A DNA stretch of 63,617 nucleotides, counting the filler, from Hyphochytrium catenoides (lineage: Eukaryota > Protista > Hyphochytriomycota), in the NCBI GenBank assembly GCA_900088475.1. It is 7 parts of 7 records of this genome, joined end to end, with 100 filler letters (N's around TTAATTAATTAA, not from the genome) between each part and the next. Parts side by side here need not be neighbours in the genome. Positions count along the whole stretch, not along the records: positions 1 to 18,941 come from FLMG01004617.1; 6 more parts are not named here. One strand, given 5' to 3'. The position numbers and the translations under genes were made by a program. Below are positions 2,958-18,941 of the stretch, in pieces. The number at the start of each line of letters is the position of its first letter. Within the stretch, counting starts at the first letter, position 1. The notes under the pieces are model-generated. The model was not told the DNA's origin and made no database searches. It saw only the letters and a list, made by a program, of their open reading frames with translations.

Positions 2958-3054
2958 CTGGAGACTATAAGGCATCAGCTGAAAAGGCCACAAAGTAGAC
3001 TGGAAATTTATGAGACAAGATGAGAGACCAGACGGGCTGCCTGCTCATAGAAAG

Positions 3055-4895
3055 TTAGGCTTGAAGGACTGCCGCACCGCTGCCATCCTCTGGCTGGGCG
3101 AGAGAACTAAGCTCAATCGCTGGGTGGTCATTGTGCCACTGTCCTTCATATATAACCGCGTTAGACCTACTGAGCACGCCATAACCCTCTCTTTTCCCCA
3201 TTCTCCATGATCCTGGAAACAAACGAGCATTAGTCGTGGAGTAGACGGGAGAGAAAAGAAGAGAGGCTGAGGAGAGAAGTAAGCGGAATAAAGAGGATCA
3301 ATTACTGAGAGAGAAAAATAAGGAGAGCAAGTGTGGTCCGCACAAGGCAGGGAACGACCTTTGTACTCCTCTCCATTGCTGTACACACAGAGTCCCTCGC
3401 CATGGCGCTGGTCATCTAGCCAGTTCCCCTCGTATCGACTCCCAGAGGGAAGAATGGAGCGTCCTATAAAGACGAAATACAGTGAGAGAGAGAGAGGGAG
3501 GACGGGCAGAGAGGCTCTTTCTCTCCGTGTCCCTACCTTTGCCACAGCGCTTTCCTCCTACCCATTTCCCTTCATAGACCTCCTTCGTGACAGCATCACG
3601 GTACTTGCCAAACCCATTGCGGACATTAGAGCGCCAGGCCCCGTTGTACTCTGAGCCGTCCGGATAGTAACACAGTCCCAAGCTAGATAGACAGATGAGT
3701 TAGCATCATGGACAGAGCGGGCCATACAGATACAGCAGGTAATGCCGGGAGAGAGAGAAAAAAAGAGGGACAGAAAGGAACAGGATACTCCGAGTAAGCC
3801 CTATTCGGTTTAGCACCAAGCTGAGCGAAGAGCAAAAGAGAGAGAAAGAGAGATAAAGGGTGATAGAGAGAGCCACGAGAAGACATCGCGTTGCTCTCGC
3901 CCTCCTCTAGCTGCTTGTTTACTCCGCTATCGCGGATAAGCGTACCCTTCTCTTTGATTGTTGGCGAACCATCCTTCATACTTAGTGCCCAAGCGGGGAT
4001 AGCTGACGGAGGTGGCCACTCCCTGTCCGTGGCGCTTTCCATCAGTCCACTCTCCTTCATAGTTCTCCTTCTGCCCTAGGGAGGTCTCCCAGGTCAGCTT
4101 ACCCCAGCCGTGATGCTGGTCACATTTCCAGCTCCCTAGGTACGGGGAAGTGATGCAGAGTGAGCTGAGAGTGCAGCGAGAGAGAAAAGAGAGAGAGAGA
4201 GAGTCTAGGTCCGACTCCTCGAGAGTCAGTGCTAGCACTTTGCAAGGGAATGAAGGATAAGGAAGTGAGACACTCCTAGGGCCATGGCCTGCCAGAATGG
4301 ATGTGGAACAAGTGTCCAGAGGATAGCGAAACAGTCGCAGTCGATTAGATGACGGGACGAGACGCGCGTTTACCTTCATAAATGGATCCATCTCTGTACA
4401 GGCACTTTCCTGAGCCACTCTTCTTGTCAGCCTCCCAGTGTCCCTCATACCGGGTCTGAGCATGGAAGGAAGGGCATTGGCAAGGGGAACAAAGATCAAA
4501 AGTTTGCAAGAGTGAGCTGCTCAAGGGAAAGGAGAAGGGTGTTAAGGGGATGCATGGGGCGCTTACATAGTCTCTCGTCATGATCATGACTCCTCTGCCT
4601 TGCCTCTGGCCGGCCTTCCAGGCTCCCTCATAGAGTCCTCCGTCTTTATAGCTCATCCTTCCCTCTCCATATATTTCGTCAGCGTTCCACTCGCCGCTGT
4701 ATTGGTCACCATTGGCAAAGGTCATGACTCCCTGTCCATGCCGCTTGTCATGCCGCCAGTCTCCCTCGTACTTTGAGCCGTCTAGGTAGGTGCAGAGTCC
4801 CACACCATGGCGCTTGCCTTCAAGGACTTCCCCGCTGTAGCTGTCGCCAGACGCCGTGACTAGAGTCTTTATTGGGCTTTCCACCACGGCTGGAC

Positions 4896-8824: not shown

Positions 8825-11800
8825 TCAGAAAGAAGAAGCGAAGAGGGAGGTGAGCCTTGAGATGCTGCTCTCTTTGTACGACTTCTCCAGTGTGGTCAAG
8901 TCCACCTGGTACTGAGCTACCCGTTTGTCCAGCACCTTTTCAATCTTCTTGATCAACGCAGGAAGCCCTTCATTAGCATCCTTGGCGCACTCCACCAGGC
9001 GGCCTTGAAGCTCCTTTATTCTCGAGATGCAAGACGCCGAAGCAGCTCCCAAGTCATGAAGCCTTTTGCGACGGCCGGCAATGGACTGATTCACTCTCTG
9101 TAGCTCTTCCGCCATCTGCGTCTCAATGTCCTTGACCTTCAGCTTGAAGGTGGAAATGTCGGCCTTTCGCCTGGTACCAAGGGCTCGTTTGGTGGCCTGA
9201 AGCTCCTCCTCTATGGCCTTGTCAAAGCTCTGCACCAGTTGTATACGTCGTGTTTCTTTCCAGTCGACGTCCAGCTCCTTGGCTTTAAGGGCGACAGCCT
9301 CGATATCAGACTTCACACGCTTATACCTCTTGCACAGATGAGGGTGAGACAAGAGATTGGCTTCTGCACTCTCCATTCCCCTCTTCTTCCTTGCTGTATC
9401 CAGATGGTCTCTTCGGCCGCCAGATCCATGCGGAGGATGGTAGGTCACGGTCTTCTCAGTCACCGGAAAATTCTTCTCCTTCTTTTCAGTTATTACATCC
9501 TCTGATAAAGCAGATAAAGAACTTCAGATGATTGACAAGGAGGTTGTGGTGTGAGAACGTTTGCAGAGACTCTTACCGACAACCGAGCTCCAATTACGCT
9601 TGATCCAGGGCAGTTCCTCTTCCCGTTTCTCTTTTAACTGGCTTGTCCCAGTCGCGTTGTATGCCATGGTAGCACAACTTGATGGAGTAAATGGCCTTTC
9701 TTTGTTGGCTGACCCTTCAATAGCTCTTCTGAGAGATGGAGTGTTCCCTGGAAAAGTGGAAGGCGAGGTTAGTTTATCCTGAACCTTCTTCCTCTATCAC
9801 ACATTTTCTTCCTCTATCACACAGAGGCGGCCATCAAAAGACTTTCTAGAGACCTGTGAGACCGTGAGAGGATATAGACTTTCTGCGAGTAAGGTTTTCT
9901 ACTGGACTTTGAATCTGATGATGACTCTCAGCTATCGTCCGTTTGAGGCTTGGAGTCCCTGTTTCCAGGCAAAAAGATGAGGAGGCAGGATCTCGTTATG
10001 GCCTCAACCCAGGTCCTTGTCGGCCTTCTTCATGCTTTTCTCTACCAAAGCTCTACTTACCTTCAAAGCTAATGCGTGACAACCCAATTCTAGAAGGGTC
10101 CTCGTTATTGCCTGCCACGTCATTGTCGTAAGGCCTGCTTTCAGAAGAGTGTGACCGCTTCGCGATTCGCCGCATGGCGGTACCGCACCGGTTGACCGCG
10201 TCGTCTTCTCTGTCCTTGTTGGTTCTACCTTCTGTCGCATGTCTTTCAAGATGAGTTGAAGGTGACCCGGTTCCGTTACATATAGAGTCTCCTGAAGTAT
10301 TACGCCCTTGTTGGTAGAGATCATTGCCCGTTCGTTGCGCGGCACGAGTCCTCCTGATATCGTGTCCAAGAGCTTGAGGAGTTTCGGACAGAGAGGAGGA
10401 CGCTCGCTCAACTGCTGCCGTCTTCTGGCTAGAAAATGAGCGATCACCCCCTGCGATGGATGATGGGTTCAATCAGCCGCCGTCGTGATGAGAAAACAAA
10501 GATAAAGTTGCTCTTGTTGGATCGGTCACACGTACCTGAGCAGCAGGCTCGGTCGGCCTTGTTGTCAAGTTTGCTTTGAGCATGGGAAGAGGGAGAAAGA
10601 GACTGCTGACCACTGCCAGGATGCAAATGTGCTTTTTGGTCTTCTTTGCATCTACTACTTCTCAGGGAAAGCTTGCTCGCCCTGCCTTGCGCTGCAGTTC
10701 TCGCTCCTGCAATTACAACCTACTTCCCCCAGTTAGGGTGAGACAAAGGCACCACAACTCACATCGCTACCACCAACCTTTCTCTCCTGTGGCACAGATT
10801 GAGCAGCCCCGTCGTTTCCTTTCTCCTTCAAGGGCTCTTCGTTGTTCTTTGCAGGCGCGAGAGCGTTTTGGGAGGACCGCAGTTCATCTGCTTTTTCGCT
10901 TGCGGCACTCTTCTCCTCAATCTTGTTGGCACTAGATGGTTCAGGAAGAGTTGTGGAGATCCAAATGTCCTTTGTAGACGCACTAACTTCGCGAAGGCCG
11001 GCGATATTTAAGATGCGGCCTTTGAACTGATCCTGAGTAGAGGATACGGCAGTTATCATGGTGTGACTCTGAAAGCGGTGTTCTGTTCCCTTGCTTTTTG
11101 TCGCCCTTAGAGGACCTACCGATACAGGCGTCTCGATGTGAAGAACGAGCCTCACGGCCCTTCCACTAATTGGCGTCGCTGTCGCTTTGGAGCCACAAAG
11201 CGGGTGAATACTTTCATTTCCTTGGCGGAAGTTCACTTCAAGGTTGACTACAGGGTCAGCCAACCTGGCCGACTCTCCAAACTCAGCCCAGGTGAGCTCA
11301 CGCCTCCAAATTCTTATAGGAAAAGAGGCCCCCATGTGGTAGATCGAAAAGCAAATACTGTTGCTGCCGACATCTAACCAGTTCTCCGCTCCTCCAGGAA
11401 CCAAAGGGATGCCAGTCTGTTCCCCAAGATTTTAGTAACCGAAAAGCAGCAGTAGCGGAGGTTAAACCGAGACCGGTGAGCCGTCACGAAGGTAGTGTCA
11501 TTCTTTTAGACTACTACTTACAACCGTTTCTGTCGTGCTTTCGCCTCCAGGGATGACTTTCAGTAGCTGGACCTTCTTGATTCGTTGGGAAAGTACGGCG
11601 CCATGATTTGCACGGTTGAGATTGTTGATGACAGTTCTGGCTGCCGTTTTAAATGGCTAAGAATACAAAGATAGAGAATGGAGGGTAAAGAGCAAGCCGT
11701 GATGCATCATCGTTATATAGATACCATAATGGGCGACGACAGATGGGAAGCCTACCTTCCCCACCATTCCATTTAGCATGGCCAAGAGCTTTCCATCAAG

Positions 11801-12861
11801 TCGTTTGGATAGAGAAGAAGAAGTCGAATTGCCTCCAGACGACTCAAGCTTCAGCAAGCGAAATATTATCTCAATGCCATTCGCCTGTAAAGAGTATTCA
11901 CTCATCATCGGAACAGCGTTGCTAAGCGCCACCACGCTGTCAAGGGTCTCGTTATCCTGGACAATCTTCAACTTGGTGGCCTTCCTTGCCCATTGCAGAA
12001 CACTTAGCGCGAGCTCCGACGCAGTGTCAGCTACCATTCCATCACTGTCAGCTTCTTCAAGATAGACTCGTAGTGCTTTTCGAAAAAGGAGCGACCCTAT
12101 GCCATTGATGCTAGACAGAGTTTCAACCTCAACCTAAATACAATACATGGAGTAAACGAAAGGGTCATCAGCAGGTCAATGAGAGCGAGGAAGCACCCGA
12201 TATTCTCGTCTACTCTCGTCCTACCAGAACGGCAAGCCCTTGCAGGAACTCGCAGAACGCCGGCTGACAGTGGCACGAGTGGGAAGATTGTTGCTGAAAT
12301 GCTTCCAACGCCATTTCTACGTGTGAGCCAATGTTATGCTGCAGCATCAACATGCAGTGCTTCTTCTGCTCAGAAAGTTGTTCCAGTATCTTTAAGGCGC
12401 TGATTGTCTTGATTTGTCGAGATGGTTCCGGTCATTGATATAGAGATAGTCCGTCAGTTAATTAGACTTCGCCTTTTCCTTGTTGCTCTAAGTACTTCCA
12501 GCAATGCTTGTCGTCCATCGACATAGGCCTTTACTTACCGTGTCGTAGTTCCCAGCTTCTGCCTCTGCGCTGAGATCCTGGCATACTCTTTTGACTAGAT
12601 CGGACCCTAAGACTGGAGGAAGTTCTTTCTCCAATTTTGTCTGCTGAAGCGCCTGATACCTGTCTTTTGCAGAAACCGCAGCCTGCCAAATGGTAGGGAG
12701 ATTGGTTTACGTGGGCAAGCAGGTAGTAGCCAAAGGAGACTTTAGTCATAAGTACACCCGTCATCGAATCATCAATGGAGGACACAGTGGGCAGAGCAAT
12801 CAACGCTCCACCACCAAGAATTACGAACCTTGAGTAAGGCTCGCAACTTGAATAACTCCAT
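8825..12861 (-). CDS. Putative meiotic chromosome-axis core protein (SYCP2/Red1/Rec10-like): ARM-like + PH-like domains, closure-like motif, disordered linker, C-terminal coiled coil
   Basis: Spliced path: MELFKLRALLK | AAVSAKDRYQAL...GNYDT | TISALKILEQL... | GRSFFEKALRVY...EYSLQANGIEIIFRLL...GMVGK | PFKTAARTVINNLN... | ...ENWLDVGSNSICFSIY...LREVSASTKDIWI..., then S/T-rich exons and a heptad-rich terminal ORF (8825-9463). Some central exon borders are uncertain. Confidence 0.6.
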
Positions 12862-14601: not shown

Positions 14602-16383
14602 CTACTTGTGTGACTCCTCCCCAAGTGAGATATTGGCACTAATGTGCGGCTGCCCTTCTTCTTCCATCGCGTTCTGTTGTCCAGAAGAAGCTATAATTAG
14701 AAAATGCATTGCCCCTTCTGCCCAGTGTCTGAGGCAGTACGGTCCTTGATGATCCTCTCCTGCAAGCCGCCTATCACAGCCTGCTTTAGAGCACCATCGG
14801 AGCTTAGTAATATCCGCTGCCAGTGCCGCTATATGGTCTCTGCAGAGCCCTCGTCCACCCTTTGCCGGAATCGTGCAGCCAGTGGCAGTGCAGAACTTCA
14901 ATATCGTTGACGCATTGTGATCTATGCAGAGACCTTTGGAAGTGCTAGGCTTCATACAACCAGATGCAGAGCAACGCATTGTCTCTGTGTAATGAGCGTC
15001 GCAAAGGCCCTGGGCCGTCGCTTTCTTCCGACAGCTTTGCATGAGACATACCAAAAGCCCATCTGCAGATTCTGAGATAGTTGATGACATGCTTGTGCGG
15101 TGGCTACTATTGGCGGATGGAGGAGCACGGCTAGACTCACGGCATGGACTGCCCTCTTCTTCGTTGTCCTTGATGCTGGTGGCAGAGGGAAGGGCATTTT
15201 TTGCACCAGCAGATGCTTCCTTACGCGGAATCTCATTTGCTTCAACATAATGAAGCCAGCACATCTGCCCTGTGTGGGCCTTTTTGGGGCATCCTATGAT
15301 TACGCACAGACGCGGTGGGGCACCATGACCCTTGCAGAGCCCCATCCCTTGATTTCGCTTGCCACAGCCCCAGACAGAGCAATAGCTTCTACTCGTCGAC
15401 TGGTGCCGTCGACAAAGGCCCTGTGCTCCAGCAGTCCTTGACACTTCTGCGCAGCCTTTCACGGGACACTGACCAGCTATATTGCTGGGCCGGACCTCCT
15501 TCTTGGTGCTGTTTGCTCTTGCTTGTGTTTCTTGTTCCTTCTGGTGTGCCATACACAGACTTCCACCTACCTTTGCCTCTTTATTGCACTCTAGAATAGC
15601 ACAGCAGCCGTGAATCTTCCTCTTCTTAGGGCTTCTGATTTTGCTGCGGTTGACTTGTTGCTCAAGGACGATGGAGATCTCGGTAAGAGGAGAGGCAAAA
15701 AGGTGACGAGAAGTAGCCTTTGTCTGTTCTGGGAACCTCTTACTTTGACGGTGAGTCATTCTGTTCTGTTCCTTGTGAGGAGGCAGGGCCGGTGATTTCT
15801 CTTTCCCAGTCTTCATGGTAGCGCTGCTGGCTGGGCACTTCTTCGTCGCTCCATTAGAAGCTAAAGCAGTGGTTACAGAAGACTCGTTGGAAGATGTGGG
15901 GTACGATGAAGACAAAGAACAGAGAAAGGATGAGTCCAGCGTCCCAATCATCTCGCATGACGGCTCAGTCATGGACGCTCCTCGCCTTTCCGCTGGACTC
16001 TTTGTCTCCTCCTTGATCCAGATGTCTTCTTCTTGCTCAAAGAGGTCCTCCTCTAGTTCCATCTCTGGCTCGTGCTCTTGTTCTTCAATAATTTTTGAGC
16101 TATCTGTTCCGTTGTCCGTGGTCGCCTGTCCCCTAACCTTGATGCTGTGGGGCTCTGCTTCTTCATCTCCCTCCTGTTCGGTCATCCATGTGAGCAAGAC
16201 TTTCTGATCCAGCTCTTCTTTCGCCTCTTCGTCTCCCAACGCAGCCGCCAGCAGCACCCTAGCAATCTGACGACTCAATACCTCGACTGAGCGGGGTTCT
16301 TGGAGGAGCTCATCATAGGGTCCCATTCTCCGCGATACGGCTCCAGAAGGTAGCCATCCATCACAAGCTCTAACCTTTGCCAT
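14602..16383 (-). CDS. Intronless protein with 8 C-x4-C-xn-C-x2-H (WRKY19-like) zinc-finger repeats
   Basis: Repeats include CSVWGCGKRNQGMGLCKGH, CSASGCMKPSTSKGLCIDH and CTATGCTIPAKGGRGLCRDH; NLS-like PKKRK. First ATG is at 16383 (the track start at 16572 is GTG). Confidence 0.8.
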   Translation of the reverse strand: MAKVRACDGWLPSGAVSRRMGPYDELLQEPRSVEVLSRQIARVLLAAALGDEEAKEELDQKVLLTWMTEQEGDEEAEPHSIKVRGQATTDNGTDSSKIIEEQEHEPEMELEEDLFEQEEDIWIKEETKSPAERRGASMTEPSCEMIGTLDSSFLCSLSSSYPTSSNESSVTTALASNGATKKCPASSATMKTGKEKSPALPPHKEQNRMTHRQSKRFPEQTKATSRHLFASPLTEISIVLEQQVNRSKIRSPKKRKIHGCCAILECNKEAKVGGSLCMAHQKEQETQARANSTKKEVRPSNIAGQCPVKGCAEVSRTAGAQGLCRRHQSTSRSYCSVWGCGKRNQGMGLCKGHGAPPRLCVIIGCPKKAHTGQMCWLHYVEANEIPRKEASAGAKNALPSATSIKDNEEEGSPCRESSRAPPSANSSHRTSMSSTISESADGLLVCLMQSCRKKATAQGLCDAHYTETMRCSASGCMKPSTSKGLCIDHNASTILKFCTATGCTIPAKGGRGLCRDHIAALAADITKLRWCSKAGCDRRLAGEDHQGPYCLRHWAEGAMHFLIIASSGQQNAMEEEGQPHISANISLGEESHK

Positions 16384-17747
16384 GTTCTCTGTCCTTGATG
16401 GTCGGCCTAGCCCGGTAACTACTAGGCTAAGAAGTACGAGGCCTAAAGAGTCTGCATCATCCGGTGATTTGAGCTCTAAAGGAAGAGATCCGTAACTGGT
16501 TGGGTTGTGCTCTCTCTCTCTCTCTCTCTCGACGTATGAGGAGATTGGATTGTGACGGAGCGGAGAGAGCACTACCTTTCCTCTTCCTGTGCTGCTCTCT
16601 TTTCTCCACTCTGTTCTCTAACCGACGGTGATCGGCAGGAGTAAGGTAGGAGAAGCGGGAGGAGAAGTAAACGTCCTCGATTCGCTAGGAGAAGCCAACC
16701 GAGCAGGGAAACAGAGGTGAGAGGGTGTTCATTGAAATATCCTCCCTTCCCCGGAATCAGTGTTACTATTGTACGGCAACAGCCACTTGTCATCTTACCT
16801 CTCTCTCTCTCTCTCCTCTATGCTCTTTCTCTCACTCTTTTCTCTCTCCTCTAATTCTTACTGGGAGAGGAAGGACAGCAGGCATCATAGACTCACCTCA
16901 GGAGATTGGGACGTGTATCAAGGACTTCACCTCTGGTATTAAGCGTGTACCAGGAGGCTAGAGAGACAGTACAGATATAGCAGGCAGAAGGATGGATAAA
17001 TGACAAGGACCCCAAGCAGTCGGAGGCAAGCGGGGAAGGAGAGGGGAAGAGAGAGACAAGACGACGTGACAGAACGAGAGAAAGGAAAAGAAGAGGAGAA
17101 GTGAGACCGTCCGAAAGGTAGCAAGAGAAAAAGCAAGAGAAAGCCAGACTCGAAGGAAAAGGTCTTTGTACCCTTTCCAGTTACCCATGGCAAGATCTGC
17201 AATTTTTATGAGCGCGCTCTCTCTCTTTTTTTTTTTCCTCTTTCTCTCGCGTTTACCCCTCTAGCAGATCTCTCTCCTGCCCATCCCTCTCTTCCATCTT
17301 CTCTCACATCAATCCATGTTTCAAAAGCCTACTCTTCTTCGCTTGGTTCTTCTTATCTCTCAATCTCTTTCTTTACTCCCGTTTTCTCGTTTCCGCACCT
17401 CTCTCTCCCTCTCGCTATCTCTCTCTTTTAACCGGAACCCCTCTATATCTTTTTTTTTTCTTTTCCTCTCTTCTTTTCTTTGTCGTGCTCTCTCTTCTTT
17501 CCCATCCCTCATTCTTTCCTTTCTTTCTTGTTCTGTCTGTCTCACTTTCTTCTCTCTCTCTCTATCGTTCTCTCTCTCTCTATCTTTCTCTCTCTCCTCT
17601 CTCTTGTCTCGTCTATGATCTCCACGCTGCGGCCGAAACCTTCCATATTTCTAGCAGGCTCGATGCTTTCGTTTTCCCTTTCTGTGTTCCCTGTCTCCTT
17701 TCAAAGGACCGAGCGGGCAAGGGCAAAAGGCGGGAGAAAGAAAGGAA

Positions 17748-17785
<38 letters not shown>

Positions 17786-18941
17786 AACGCGGACGTCATA
17801 ACGGTAGTGACTGCCCACTACCGTTTTATTACTACTGCCCTGTATCCTATGAAGTAAACAGCGTTAGGGACTCACCCCGCCAGGGATACTATTGACGACC
17901 CTCTAGATTTTCACGAAAAGGGCCATCTTGATCCCCTCCTCTCTCTCTCTCTCNNNNNNNNNNNNNNNNNNNNNNNNNNNNNNNNNNNNNNNNNNNNNNN
18001 NNNNNNNNNNNNNNNNNNNNNNNNNNNNNNNNNNNNNNNNNNNNNNNNNNNNNNNNNNNNNNNNNNNNNNNCTCTCTTTTTATTTTAACTTTGCTCTCTC
18101 TCTTTCCTTCTCTCCTCCCTCTCTCCCTGTGCTCGCTGTCTTTGTCTCTCTTCTATACTTGTCCCTGCGGGTTTTTTGTTCCTTTCTCCCTCTTTCTCTT
18201 CCTCACTTCTTTGCTAGACTTTTCCTGGCGTGCCCTCTCTCTCTTCTCTCGCTCTCTGTTTGTGTCTCTGCCTTTTACCCCTCCTTTCATCACTGTTGTC
18301 CATCCCACATCTTCTTTCTTTCTCTTCTTCTCCGTCATCATCACGTTCTCCTTCTTTCGTGTCCGTTTCTTTAGAAGAAGAGCAGCGGGACGTCAGTTCT
18401 TCTGCTCTTCCCAGCTGCAAGAGAGGAATGGCGGTCAGATGAGAGACAGAGAGAAATGAAAGAGAGAGAATTGCGAGAACAGAGGACGAAGGACGGGTGA
18501 AAGACGGAGGAGCAGGAGAGCACACCCTCCACGAGGAAGAGGAAGGGAACAAGGGTCCTGGGTAGTGGTGCTGATGAGCGCCAGCCGCAACAGGCCGTCA
18601 GTCTCACATTCTCTTCCTTTCGACCAGAAAGGCCAGGAACCTTGATCTAATGCTTCATGGACCTACAGCTCTCTCTGGAAAGAGGTCGCTAGAAGATGAC
18701 TCTGGGGAGCGCAGTAGGAGACGGAAGATCGGCCCCTCAATAATTAGGCTCTGCTAGCAGTATCTTTGCTCAGGAAGCGTGCTGGGTTAGGTTTCTTCTC
18801 TCGTGCTAGCTCGCCAGCAGAATCCTGCTGCAGAAGATTAGAGTCATTCTCTCCTCCTCTTGATCGTCCTGCGACGGGTACCAAAGGCATAACTGTTATA
18901 TGTGTGTTACCTCCTAGTAGTTCTCCACCCTTACTTCTGAC

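Follow-up and report, generated by a model that had tools for sequence, protein, structure and literature searches.

A minus-strand locus of about 4 kb in the genome of Hyphochytrium catenoides, lying within the window analysed here (the whole stretch of 63,617 nucleotides, filler included), is probably a single 11-exon gene with a predicted protein of about 1000 residues. In the modelled frames the locus is protein-coding and under purifying selection, and its predicted protein is missing from the protein databases that we searched, where it has no detectable relatives. With roughly even confidence, we read it as a genuine protein-coding gene, likely of 11 exons, whose basic product of ~112 kDa, without detectable relatives, would serve as a scaffold, a role suggested by its architecture.

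Gene model of the locus

Read from the sequence, a chain of 11 exons bounded by GT-AG introns of matching phase runs along the minus strand from 12861 to 8825. The modelled CDS of 3054 nt (1017 aa) extends without interruption from the ATG at 12861 to a TGA at 8827-8825, in agreement with the preliminary description, which had proposed an exon chain from this ATG. Exon 1 (12829..12861; aa 1-11) starts at the first ATG of its open frame and has a GT donor at 12828; it is below the length usable for a codon-bias test. Exon 2 (12539..12682; aa 12-59) has an AG acceptor, a GTAAGT donor and phase 0, with the model frame at the top of its codon scores, and GT-AG borders in phase 0 also delimit exon 3 (12225..12407; aa 60-120) and exon 5 (11522..11656; aa 247-291). 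Between these two lies exon 4 (11756..12133; aa 121-246), set in a 158-codon open frame and encoding an ARM/HEAT-like helical segment that contains EYSLQANGIEIIFRL (11855-11899; aa 199-213), whilst FKTAARTVINNLN (11615-11653; aa 248-260) falls in exon 5. Exon 6 (10763..11416; aa 292-509), in a 232-codon open frame, encodes a beta-rich block (11015-11416; about aa 292-425) that includes ENWLDVGSNSICFSI (11342-11386; aa 302-316), after which the disordered region begins. All three of these peptides had been quoted in the preliminary description, and each was recovered in place.

Exons 7-10 form the link between the N-terminal part and the coiled coil in the model. Exon 7 (10536..10719; aa 510-571) has phase-consistent GT-AG borders and a weakly positive codon score. 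Exon 8 (10061..10450; aa 571-701) is S/T/R-rich and is covered by overlapping open frames of 139 and 154 codons; the 154-codon frame, more hydrophobic in appearance, has no Pfam match and was rejected on codon score (0.20 for the model frame versus 0.05 for the alternative) and on the codon positions of SNPs, as both exon 8 differences from the second DNA data set described below occupy third positions in codons of the model frame. Exon 9 (9854..9958; aa 701-736) has GT-AG borders in phase 1 with a weak donor, GTCTCT, and encodes the peptide TPSLKRTI, a motif found again as TPSLRRAI in exon 10 (9577..9747; aa 736-793), itself with GT-AG borders in phase 1 and a positive codon score. Exon 11 (8825..9501; aa 793-1017 plus the stop), in a further 232-codon open frame, ends in a coiled-coil-like tail (8828-9343; ~aa 846-1017). 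The exon junctions are modelled throughout, above all the 43-nt intron 5' of exon 7 and exons 7-10; the predicted exon 7 junction, with this 43-nt intron before it, is the least certain of the model, and a 58-nt intron from a donor at 10777 is equally possible.

Coding potential and purifying selection

We consider the locus to be real coding sequence because it combines open frames as long as 232 codons with codon bias and with an excess of synonymous differences relative to a second DNA data set. The same-strand open frames reach 232, 232, 158 and 139-154 codons. Using a codon log-likelihood trained solely on neighbouring ORFs, the modelled frame scored highest in 10 of the 11 exons, and the modelled introns scored mostly negative. 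The second data set, run X1, was compared with the window across the modelled exons and revealed 19 exonic differences, 11 of them synonymous in the modelled frame as compared to 5 and 2 when the frame is shifted; the synonymous share expected is 24%, and the excess in the modelled frame is significant (P=0.0014). All three differences in exon 4 are synonymous, and the one difference in exon 3 is non-synonymous. Within exon 11, seven differences at 8999-9089 are polymorphic within run X1 and five of these are synonymous, whilst the three in its 5' part (9352, 9387 and 9430) are all non-synonymous. The sole indel (1 nt, at 11694) maps to the modelled intron that precedes exon 5, a SNP at 10050 also falls in a modelled intron, and the comparison turned up neither a frameshift nor a stop codon in the two haplotypes or strains. 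A search for RNA runs yielded only DNA runs, plus three tiny runs in which nothing of the locus was found.

Domain layout of the predicted protein

From N- to C-terminus, the predicted protein consists of a helical part, a beta-rich block, an S/T-rich basic region of ~420 aa and a heptad-rich, coiled-coil-like tail of ~170 aa, the secondary-structure classes being based on weak predictions. The order that had been claimed for it (helical N-terminus, beta-rich, S/T/R-rich, C-terminal coiled coil) is therefore present, as judged by these predictions and a heptad heuristic. Protein language-model features liken the sequence of the exon 4 product to ARM/HEAT-type alpha-solenoids: nine of its ten best family-bearing matches by ESM-atlas features are alpha-solenoid families of one clan, the first match scoring 0.92 with 172 shared features (ARM/HEAT/TPR-type neighbours). 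These features resemble solenoids of the SYO1, HEATR5A, Ric8, CIP2A, V-ATPase H and PRD1 type; the protein matches none of these generic scaffold families in Pfam, and its full domain order occurs in none of them.

A beta-rich domain in exon 6 is predicted with weak support. A low-confidence AlphaFold2 model places six strands at residues 20-93 of the exon piece, and single-sequence predictions of the whole and trimmed piece reached pLDDT values of 36.9 and 32.5, at which the fold is unreliable. Foldseek searches with this poor model returned non-significant lists (best E=0.04-0.07, TM ~0.1) headed by the names Fe65/X11 PTB, RanBD and REC114, and SYCP2 was not among the top 30 Swiss-Prot fold matches. 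The middle 420 aa are 27% hydrophobic and 20% S+T, with a pI of 9.4. The last ~170 residues are heptad-rich and helical in character, as shown by heuristics and ESM-atlas neighbours: the heptad heuristic reaches its maximum at aa 841-1017, the tail is low in P+G and 35% charged, and the neighbours of the exon 11 piece are generic coiled-coil families, with resemblance to coiled coils of the ninein, DRC10 and SF-assemblin type.

Searches for relatives

Homology searches were run exon by exon from a single sequence, with no homologues from which to build a profile. An exhaustive phmmer search of exon 6 against 1.84 billion representative proteins revealed no homologue; its sole match, a fish NLR repeat (P0001; E=4.7e-4), was judged spurious. 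Word-indexed searches and metagenome scans with exons 6 and 4 found no relatives, and the ESM atlas returned nothing for exon 6. Searching every exon piece separately against Pfam gave nothing relevant at E<=10: SYCP2_SLD (PF18584), which is present in the library, matched no exon piece, and neither did the Red1/Rec10 family. A phmmer search of the PDB with exons 4, 6 and 11 likewise gave nothing relevant at E<=10. The homologue search for a neighbouring 656-aa ORF was also empty, and synteny via relatives was therefore not usable.

Comparison with SYCP2-type proteins

The preliminary description had identified the gene as a diverged member of the SYCP2/Red1/Rec10 group of meiotic axis proteins, a claim that holds for the order of domains, whilst all tests of sequence homology were negative or non-significant. 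SYCP2-type proteins (SYCP2, Red1, Rec10, ASY3 and KKT17-18) are defined by ARM, PH and C-terminal coiled-coil domains, membership being decided by significant profile similarity across the last ARM repeats and the PH/Spt16M-like domain (Tromer et al. 2021, PMC8131943); the same authors regard the helix-to-beta junction as the most diagnostic region (PMC8131943). The coiled coil is found here at the C-terminus, by heptad heuristic and ESM-atlas neighbours, whilst exon-by-exon Pfam, PDB phmmer and pairwise comparisons gave no significant similarity to the last ARM repeats and PH/Spt16M-like domain.

In its layout the predicted protein is like SYCP2 (5IWZ, PF18584), which runs in the same order from a helical ARM-like part through a beta domain and long disorder to a coiled coil at its very C-terminus. 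It differs in length (1017 aa versus about 1500), in the position of the helix-beta junction (~aa 290 versus ~280 in mouse, where the ARM-like domain proper is shorter) and in that sequence similarity between the two is not statistically significant. In overall size it is similar to Red1 and to S. pombe Rec10: S. cerevisiae Red1 has 827 aa, divided into an NTD (1-345), a closure motif (346-362), a disordered region (363-732) and a coiled coil (733-827), as compared to structured (~aa 1-430), disordered (~430-845) and coiled-coil (846-1017) regions here; the exons of the present gene have no Pfam Red1/Rec10 match. Compared by topology, KKT17 and KKT18, kinetoplastid kinetochore paralogues of SYCP2, share the ARM-PH-coiled-coil arrangement at ~1000 aa (PMC8131943), and they show that this architecture can have a non-meiotic chromosomal role (PMC8131943).

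Pairwise comparisons used residues 215-348 of mouse SYCP2, with the sequence recovered from PDB entry 5IWZ, as reference. Two of the three SYCP2 motifs given in the preliminary description occur literally in the mouse protein (DYELQVGIVEALCR and FETDCRIFLNLVN), and the third requires a two-residue shift (WIDFNLGSHTLSFYI). Short collinear resemblances between the gene and mouse SYCP2 were observed at the helix-to-beta junction (EYSLQ../DYELQ.., FKTAAR../FETDCR.., IPGGESTTE/IPSDEKLEE, DVGSNSICFSI/NLGSHTLSFYI and NLEV/NIEV). With BLASTP against SYCP2, one exon aligned at E=0.12 and another yielded no alignment. Smith-Waterman scores against 215-348 were 30-31, equalled by 35-38% of shuffles (p ~0.35), and fitting alignment gave z ~1. 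The best Smith-Waterman placement of SYCP2 277-348 in all 1017 aa is at aa 302-316, within shuffle noise, and the best BLOSUM45 fitting alignment of 215-348 begins exactly at aa 199, again with z ~1. The collinear motif chain originally proposed scored 87, as compared to 95 for another register (aa 56-209), and a score of 87 is also reached by 8.5% of windows taken from unrelated real proteins. On these alignments, the pairwise similarity to mouse SYCP2 is within chance. As the gene was singled out for its motifs, their apparent weight is inflated. The tie to SYCP2 is one of architecture and chance-level motif matches, nothing more.

Alternative explanations

The single likeliest specific identity, yet a minority hypothesis to which we give a fairly low probability, is that of a meiotic axis-core protein of SYCP2 type (SYCP2/Red1/Rec10/KKT17-18), extremely diverged and from a lineage that is, together with its relatives, absent from the protein databases searched. 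The ARM-PH part would then bind chromosomal partners, with a HORMA-domain protein recruited by a closure motif that follows it; motifs for cohesin binding or regulation would lie in the disordered linker, and the C-terminal coiled coil would form axis filaments. HORMAD-binding closure motifs follow no general consensus. Domain order and sizes fit the family definition (PMC8131943), and the ARM-like features of exon 4, the collinear resemblances at the junction, the alignment placements at aa 302-316 and aa 199 and the PH-superfold names heading the non-significant Foldseek lists point the same way, as does the tendency of axis proteins to be fast-evolving and orphan-like. Weighing against this identity are the lack of significant similarity by any method (Pfam including SYCP2_SLD, PDB phmmer, BLASTP, Smith-Waterman, fitting), the better chain in another register, the unrelated windows that score as well, the missing SYCP2 among the top fold matches and the inflated weight of motifs that were themselves the basis for selecting the finding. 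The negative pairwise tests do not refute an SYCP2 identity, because SYCP2-type proteins are too diverged for pairwise methods. The gene cannot so far be taken as evidence for sex in the organism, since a relation to SYCP2/Red1 is undemonstrated by the tests run, and the meiosis, possibly cryptic sex, deduced from it in the preliminary description is unsupported.

The locus could also comprise two or more separate same-strand genes, which we consider unlikely. An ARM-like and beta-domain protein would end after exon 6, exon 11 would be an independent small coiled-coil protein, starting for example from the Met of GMESAEAN (aa 834), and exons 7-10 would be spurious in part or in full. The union of N- and C-terminal parts is indeed a model: the other nine introns measure 75-146 nt, well above the one before exon 7, exon 9 combines its weak donor with a near-zero codon score, the non-synonymous differences in the 5' part of exon 11 are such as occur in weakly constrained or non-coding DNA, and free choice of GT and AG often yields short linking exons by chance. 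Such a split would, however, leave same-strand open frames of 91, 139/154 and 89 codons in the linking interval, improbable for non-coding DNA, and has to contend with the positive codon scores of exons 7, 8 and 10 in the model frame, the two third-position differences of exon 8, the phase kept at all five linking junctions and an exon 11 open frame that extends well upstream of the candidate internal Met. That the locus is non-functional, consisting of chance open frames or a decaying pseudogene, is very improbable: the lack of homologue and annotation would fit, but two 232-codon frames and several of at least about 90 codons on one strand of ~50% GC DNA would not, nor would a surplus of synonymous differences confined to the modelled frame, a frame-specific codon bias and intact frames in both haplotypes or strains.

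A candidate modular scaffold and its significance

If the product of the 11-exon gene is a modular scaffold, as we favour, a partner would dock onto a module made of the N-terminal solenoid and the beta-rich domain next to it, the basic S/T-rich ~420 residues would be a flexible linker bearing short motifs, among them the repeated TPSL[KR]R.I, and the C-terminal coiled coil would drive self-association. The lack of a family assignment may reflect the limits of the tools, given that the architecture is the one that defines SYCP2-type proteins.

The comparison with SYCP2 carries a lesson, in that at least three motifs can match a known family in collinear order and still be entirely chance-level. 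The solid result is a real gene of ~4 kb, absent from the protein collections searched and modelled from DNA alone. Were the protein of SYCP2 type, the gene would encode a meiotic axis component in a poorly sampled eukaryote that lacks annotation, and would offer a first handle on the meiotic chromosome-axis machinery, and hence the sexual capacity, of its lineage. An additional member would be useful and unsurprising, because SYCP2-type genes are already on record from every eukaryotic supergroup, and their history reaches back to the last eukaryotic common ancestor (PMC8131943). In that case, so far-flung a sequence could help to bridge SYCP2-type profiles across supergroups, and sex in the organism would become testable via expression timing, HORMAD partners and localisation.

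Gene model and coding evidence

On the minus strand of the 18.9-kb piece, the exon chain that the preliminary description had traced from the ATG at 12861 could be assembled in full: eleven exons joined at predicted splice junctions, with phases that agree along the chain, give a coding sequence of 3054 nt whose stop-free translation is 1017 residues long. The chain runs through exon 1 (12861-12829, opening with the ATG), exon 2 (12682-12539), exon 3 (12407-12225), exon 4 (12133-11756; aa 121-246), exon 5 (11656-11522), exon 6 (11416-10763), exon 7 (10719-10536), exon 8 (10450-10061), exon 9 (9958-9854), exon 10 (9747-9577) and the coiled-coil exon 11 (9501-8825). All modelled introns start with GT and end with AG, and they measure 75-146 nt except for the 43-nt intron ahead of exon 7, whose junction is the least secure in the model; a 58-nt intron with its donor at 10777 is equally possible there. 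The three peptides singled out earlier were found where they had been placed (EYSLQANGIEIIFRL, 11899-11855; FKTAARTVINNLN, 11653-11615; ENWLDVGSNSICFSI, 11386-11342). Modelled intron 9 contains an exact 18-nt tandem duplication, TTCTTCCTCTATCACACA, with a spacing of 20 (9786-9823).

Three independent lines of evidence, namely open frames, codon bias and polymorphism, say that the large exons are coding. Frames of 232, 232, 158 and 139/154 codons all lie on one strand in DNA of ~50% GC, and by our own calculation, (61/64)^232, a 232-codon frame has a chance of ~1.5e-5 per stop-to-stop interval. When codon log-likelihoods derived from neighbouring ORFs alone, with this gene left out, were applied, the modelled frame scored highest in 10 of the 11 exons, and introns were mostly negative. 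Comparison with X1, a DNA sequencing run that carries the same species label as the window yet differs from it in sequence, revealed 19 exonic substitutions, 11 of which are synonymous in the modelled frame (24% expected; P = 0.0014); read in the shifted frames, the numbers are 5 and 2. The sole X1 indel (1 nt, 11694) and one substitution (10050) sit in modelled introns. Both forms are present among X1 contigs at 8969-9119, and the sample is therefore either heterozygous (diploid) or a mixture of strains; the seven differing positions there, at 8999-9089 in exon 11, comprise five synonymous and two non-synonymous changes. Outside 8969-9119, X1 differs from the window at ~1 site per 300.

The weakest point of the model is the joining of its N-terminal part (exons 1-6) to the coiled-coil exon 11, where two separate genes might have been merged. 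The region linking exon 6 to exon 11 holds long open frames with positive codon scores, and both X1 differences in exon 8 (2/2) affect the third base of a codon in the model frame; a single gene is therefore favoured, and we consider it probable that exons 1-11 belong together and unlikely that the locus comprises two genes. That such a locus, open frames and synonymous differences included, should be non-functional strikes us as highly improbable. Over exon 8, two long open frames of 139 and 154 codons overlap (10007-10472, minus strand); codon score and SNP positions prefer the S/T/R-rich frame, and the alternative reads more hydrophobic.

Neighbouring features

The same piece carries a 656-aa open frame (14602-16572, minus strand) with many Cys-rich repeats of the form C..GC....A...GLC..H (Pfam Zf_WRKY19, E = 1.4e-6), and a multi-exon MORN-repeat gene (3045-4887, minus strand; Pfam MORN 1.1e-29 in 4345-4887, further repeats at 3045-3545 and 3927-4499). 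A 475-aa plus-strand frame (906-2333) is mostly E/R/D/S low-complexity sequence (RE/RD repeats) but has a tail resembling an RRM, ILVENLPNKIDESTIFSLL; the frame was unmatched in Pfam, perhaps because an intron cuts the RRM-like domain. Runs of N mark assembly gaps at 756-773 and 17954-18071, and the right-hand end of the piece (~17000-18900) shows higher AT and strong CT/GA low complexity.

Protein architecture

The order proposed in the preliminary description, from a helical N-terminus through beta-rich and S/T/R-rich regions to a C-terminal coiled coil, is present, each class being assigned by weak predictors. The first 291 residues have a hydrophobic, helical character; within them, the exon 4 piece bears language-model features of ARM/HEAT/TPR solenoids (top match 0.92, 172 shared features), and 9/10 of its best family-bearing matches in this feature search fall in one clan. 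Residues ~292-425 are enriched in P, G and beta-formers, with six strands in a low-confidence AlphaFold model. The stretch at aa 426-845 is basic (pI 9.4), with few hydrophobic residues (27%) and abundant S/T (20%), and aa 846-1017 have the top heptad scores of the whole protein, their atlas neighbours being generic coiled-coil families. A peptide recurring at aa 702 and aa 738 (TPSLKRTI and TPSLRRAI) may be a short linear motif of the disordered region. Exons 9 and 10 both start with it (G-TPSLKRTIAES and GN-TPSLRRAIEGS); we looked for a DNA-level repeat behind this shared peptide and found none.

Searches for SYCP2/Red1/Rec10 homology

Pfam searches with each exon piece (E<=10) left the SYCP2, Red1 and Rec10 families all unmatched; as a control, mouse SYCP2 277-348 matched PF18584 (SYCP2_SLD) at 2.9e-31, so the family is in the library. 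Against the PDB, phmmer with exons 4, 6 and 11 (E<=10) returned neither 5IWZ, the mouse SYCP2 N-terminal domain, nor any axis protein. When exon 6 was compared exhaustively by phmmer with 1.84 billion representative proteins, the sole match was a spurious fish NLR repeat, and word-indexed searches and two metagenome scans gave no matches. The neighbouring 656-aa ORF likewise has no database relatives (none at E<=1e-5 in a 5.8-billion protein collection); hence the database lacks both this genome and its kin, leaving no alignment to build. Two AlphaFold2 models made without an alignment had pLDDT values of 36.9 and 32.5, too low for use. Foldseek on the low-pLDDT model gave non-significant matches (Fe65 and X11 PTB, RanBD, REC114 and PHS1 top the lists; E 0.04-0.6, TM ~0.1), among which the PH-superfold names may serve as a lead, and only a lead; SYCP2 was not in the top 30 Swiss-Prot matches. 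BLAST-type searches fail across SYCP2-type proteins, and iterative profile hopping was required to link Red1, Rec10, ASY3, KKT17/18 and SYCP2 (Tromer et al., PMC8131943).

Two short PDB-search probes modelled on human SYCP2 matched only 5IWZ chain A (residues 215-276, E=2.5e-32; 277-348, E=1e-40), and the mouse letters were then taken from the search output. Two of the SYCP2 motifs given in the preliminary description, DYxLQxxxxExLxR and FxxxxRxxLNxxN, occur there literally (DYELQVGIVEALCR, FETDCRIFLNLVN), and the third, WxDxxxxSxxFxI, fits only after a two-residue shift (WIDFNLGSHTLSFYI). As far as the letters go, the short resemblance of the locus peptides to mouse SYCP2 is real. BLASTP of exon 6 versus mouse 277-348 gave E=0.12 in a single comparison, and exon 4 versus 215-276 gave no alignment. 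Smith-Waterman scores of these segments against all 1017 residues peaked at 30 and 31, equalled or exceeded by 35% and 38% of shuffles, the second segment landing on aa 302-316; a fitting alignment of 215-348 reached z ~1.0-1.2, placed at aa 199-352 with BLOSUM45 and on the C-terminal coiled coil with BLOSUM62. In the register originally proposed, a collinear ungapped chain of five blocks, including IPGGESTTE versus IPSDEKLEE and NLEV versus NIEV, scored 87 (z=3.3 versus shuffles when the search is limited to aa 190-370); an unrelated register at aa 56-209 chains at 95, and when three unrelated real proteins are divided into 181-aa windows, 8.5% of these score 87 or more. The shuffle, rival-register and unrelated-protein scores thus place the motif matches within chance range, which leaves homology unrefuted but strips the motifs of value as positive evidence.

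Identity and significance

The best-supported reading is of a real gene that encodes a modular scaffold protein and is missing from the searched protein databases, none of which contains a detectable relative. The protein's ARM-like solenoid and beta domain would form a docking module, the basic region at aa 426-845 a disordered linker, and the C-terminal coiled coil could mediate self-association. Because ARM, beta domain, disorder and terminal coiled coil, in the same order as in the locus protein, characterise the SYCP2-type family, an axis-core protein of this type is the likeliest single specific identity, albeit a doubtful one. The suggestion that the locus attests to meiosis or cryptic sex in this lineage is unsupported, SYCP2 homology being unproven. 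Should the SYCP2-type assignment be wrong, the protein would be one further lineage-restricted ARM and coiled-coil protein; if true, it would add another member to a known, already pan-eukaryotic family (PMC8131943), not surprising in general but helpful in understanding this organism's biology.
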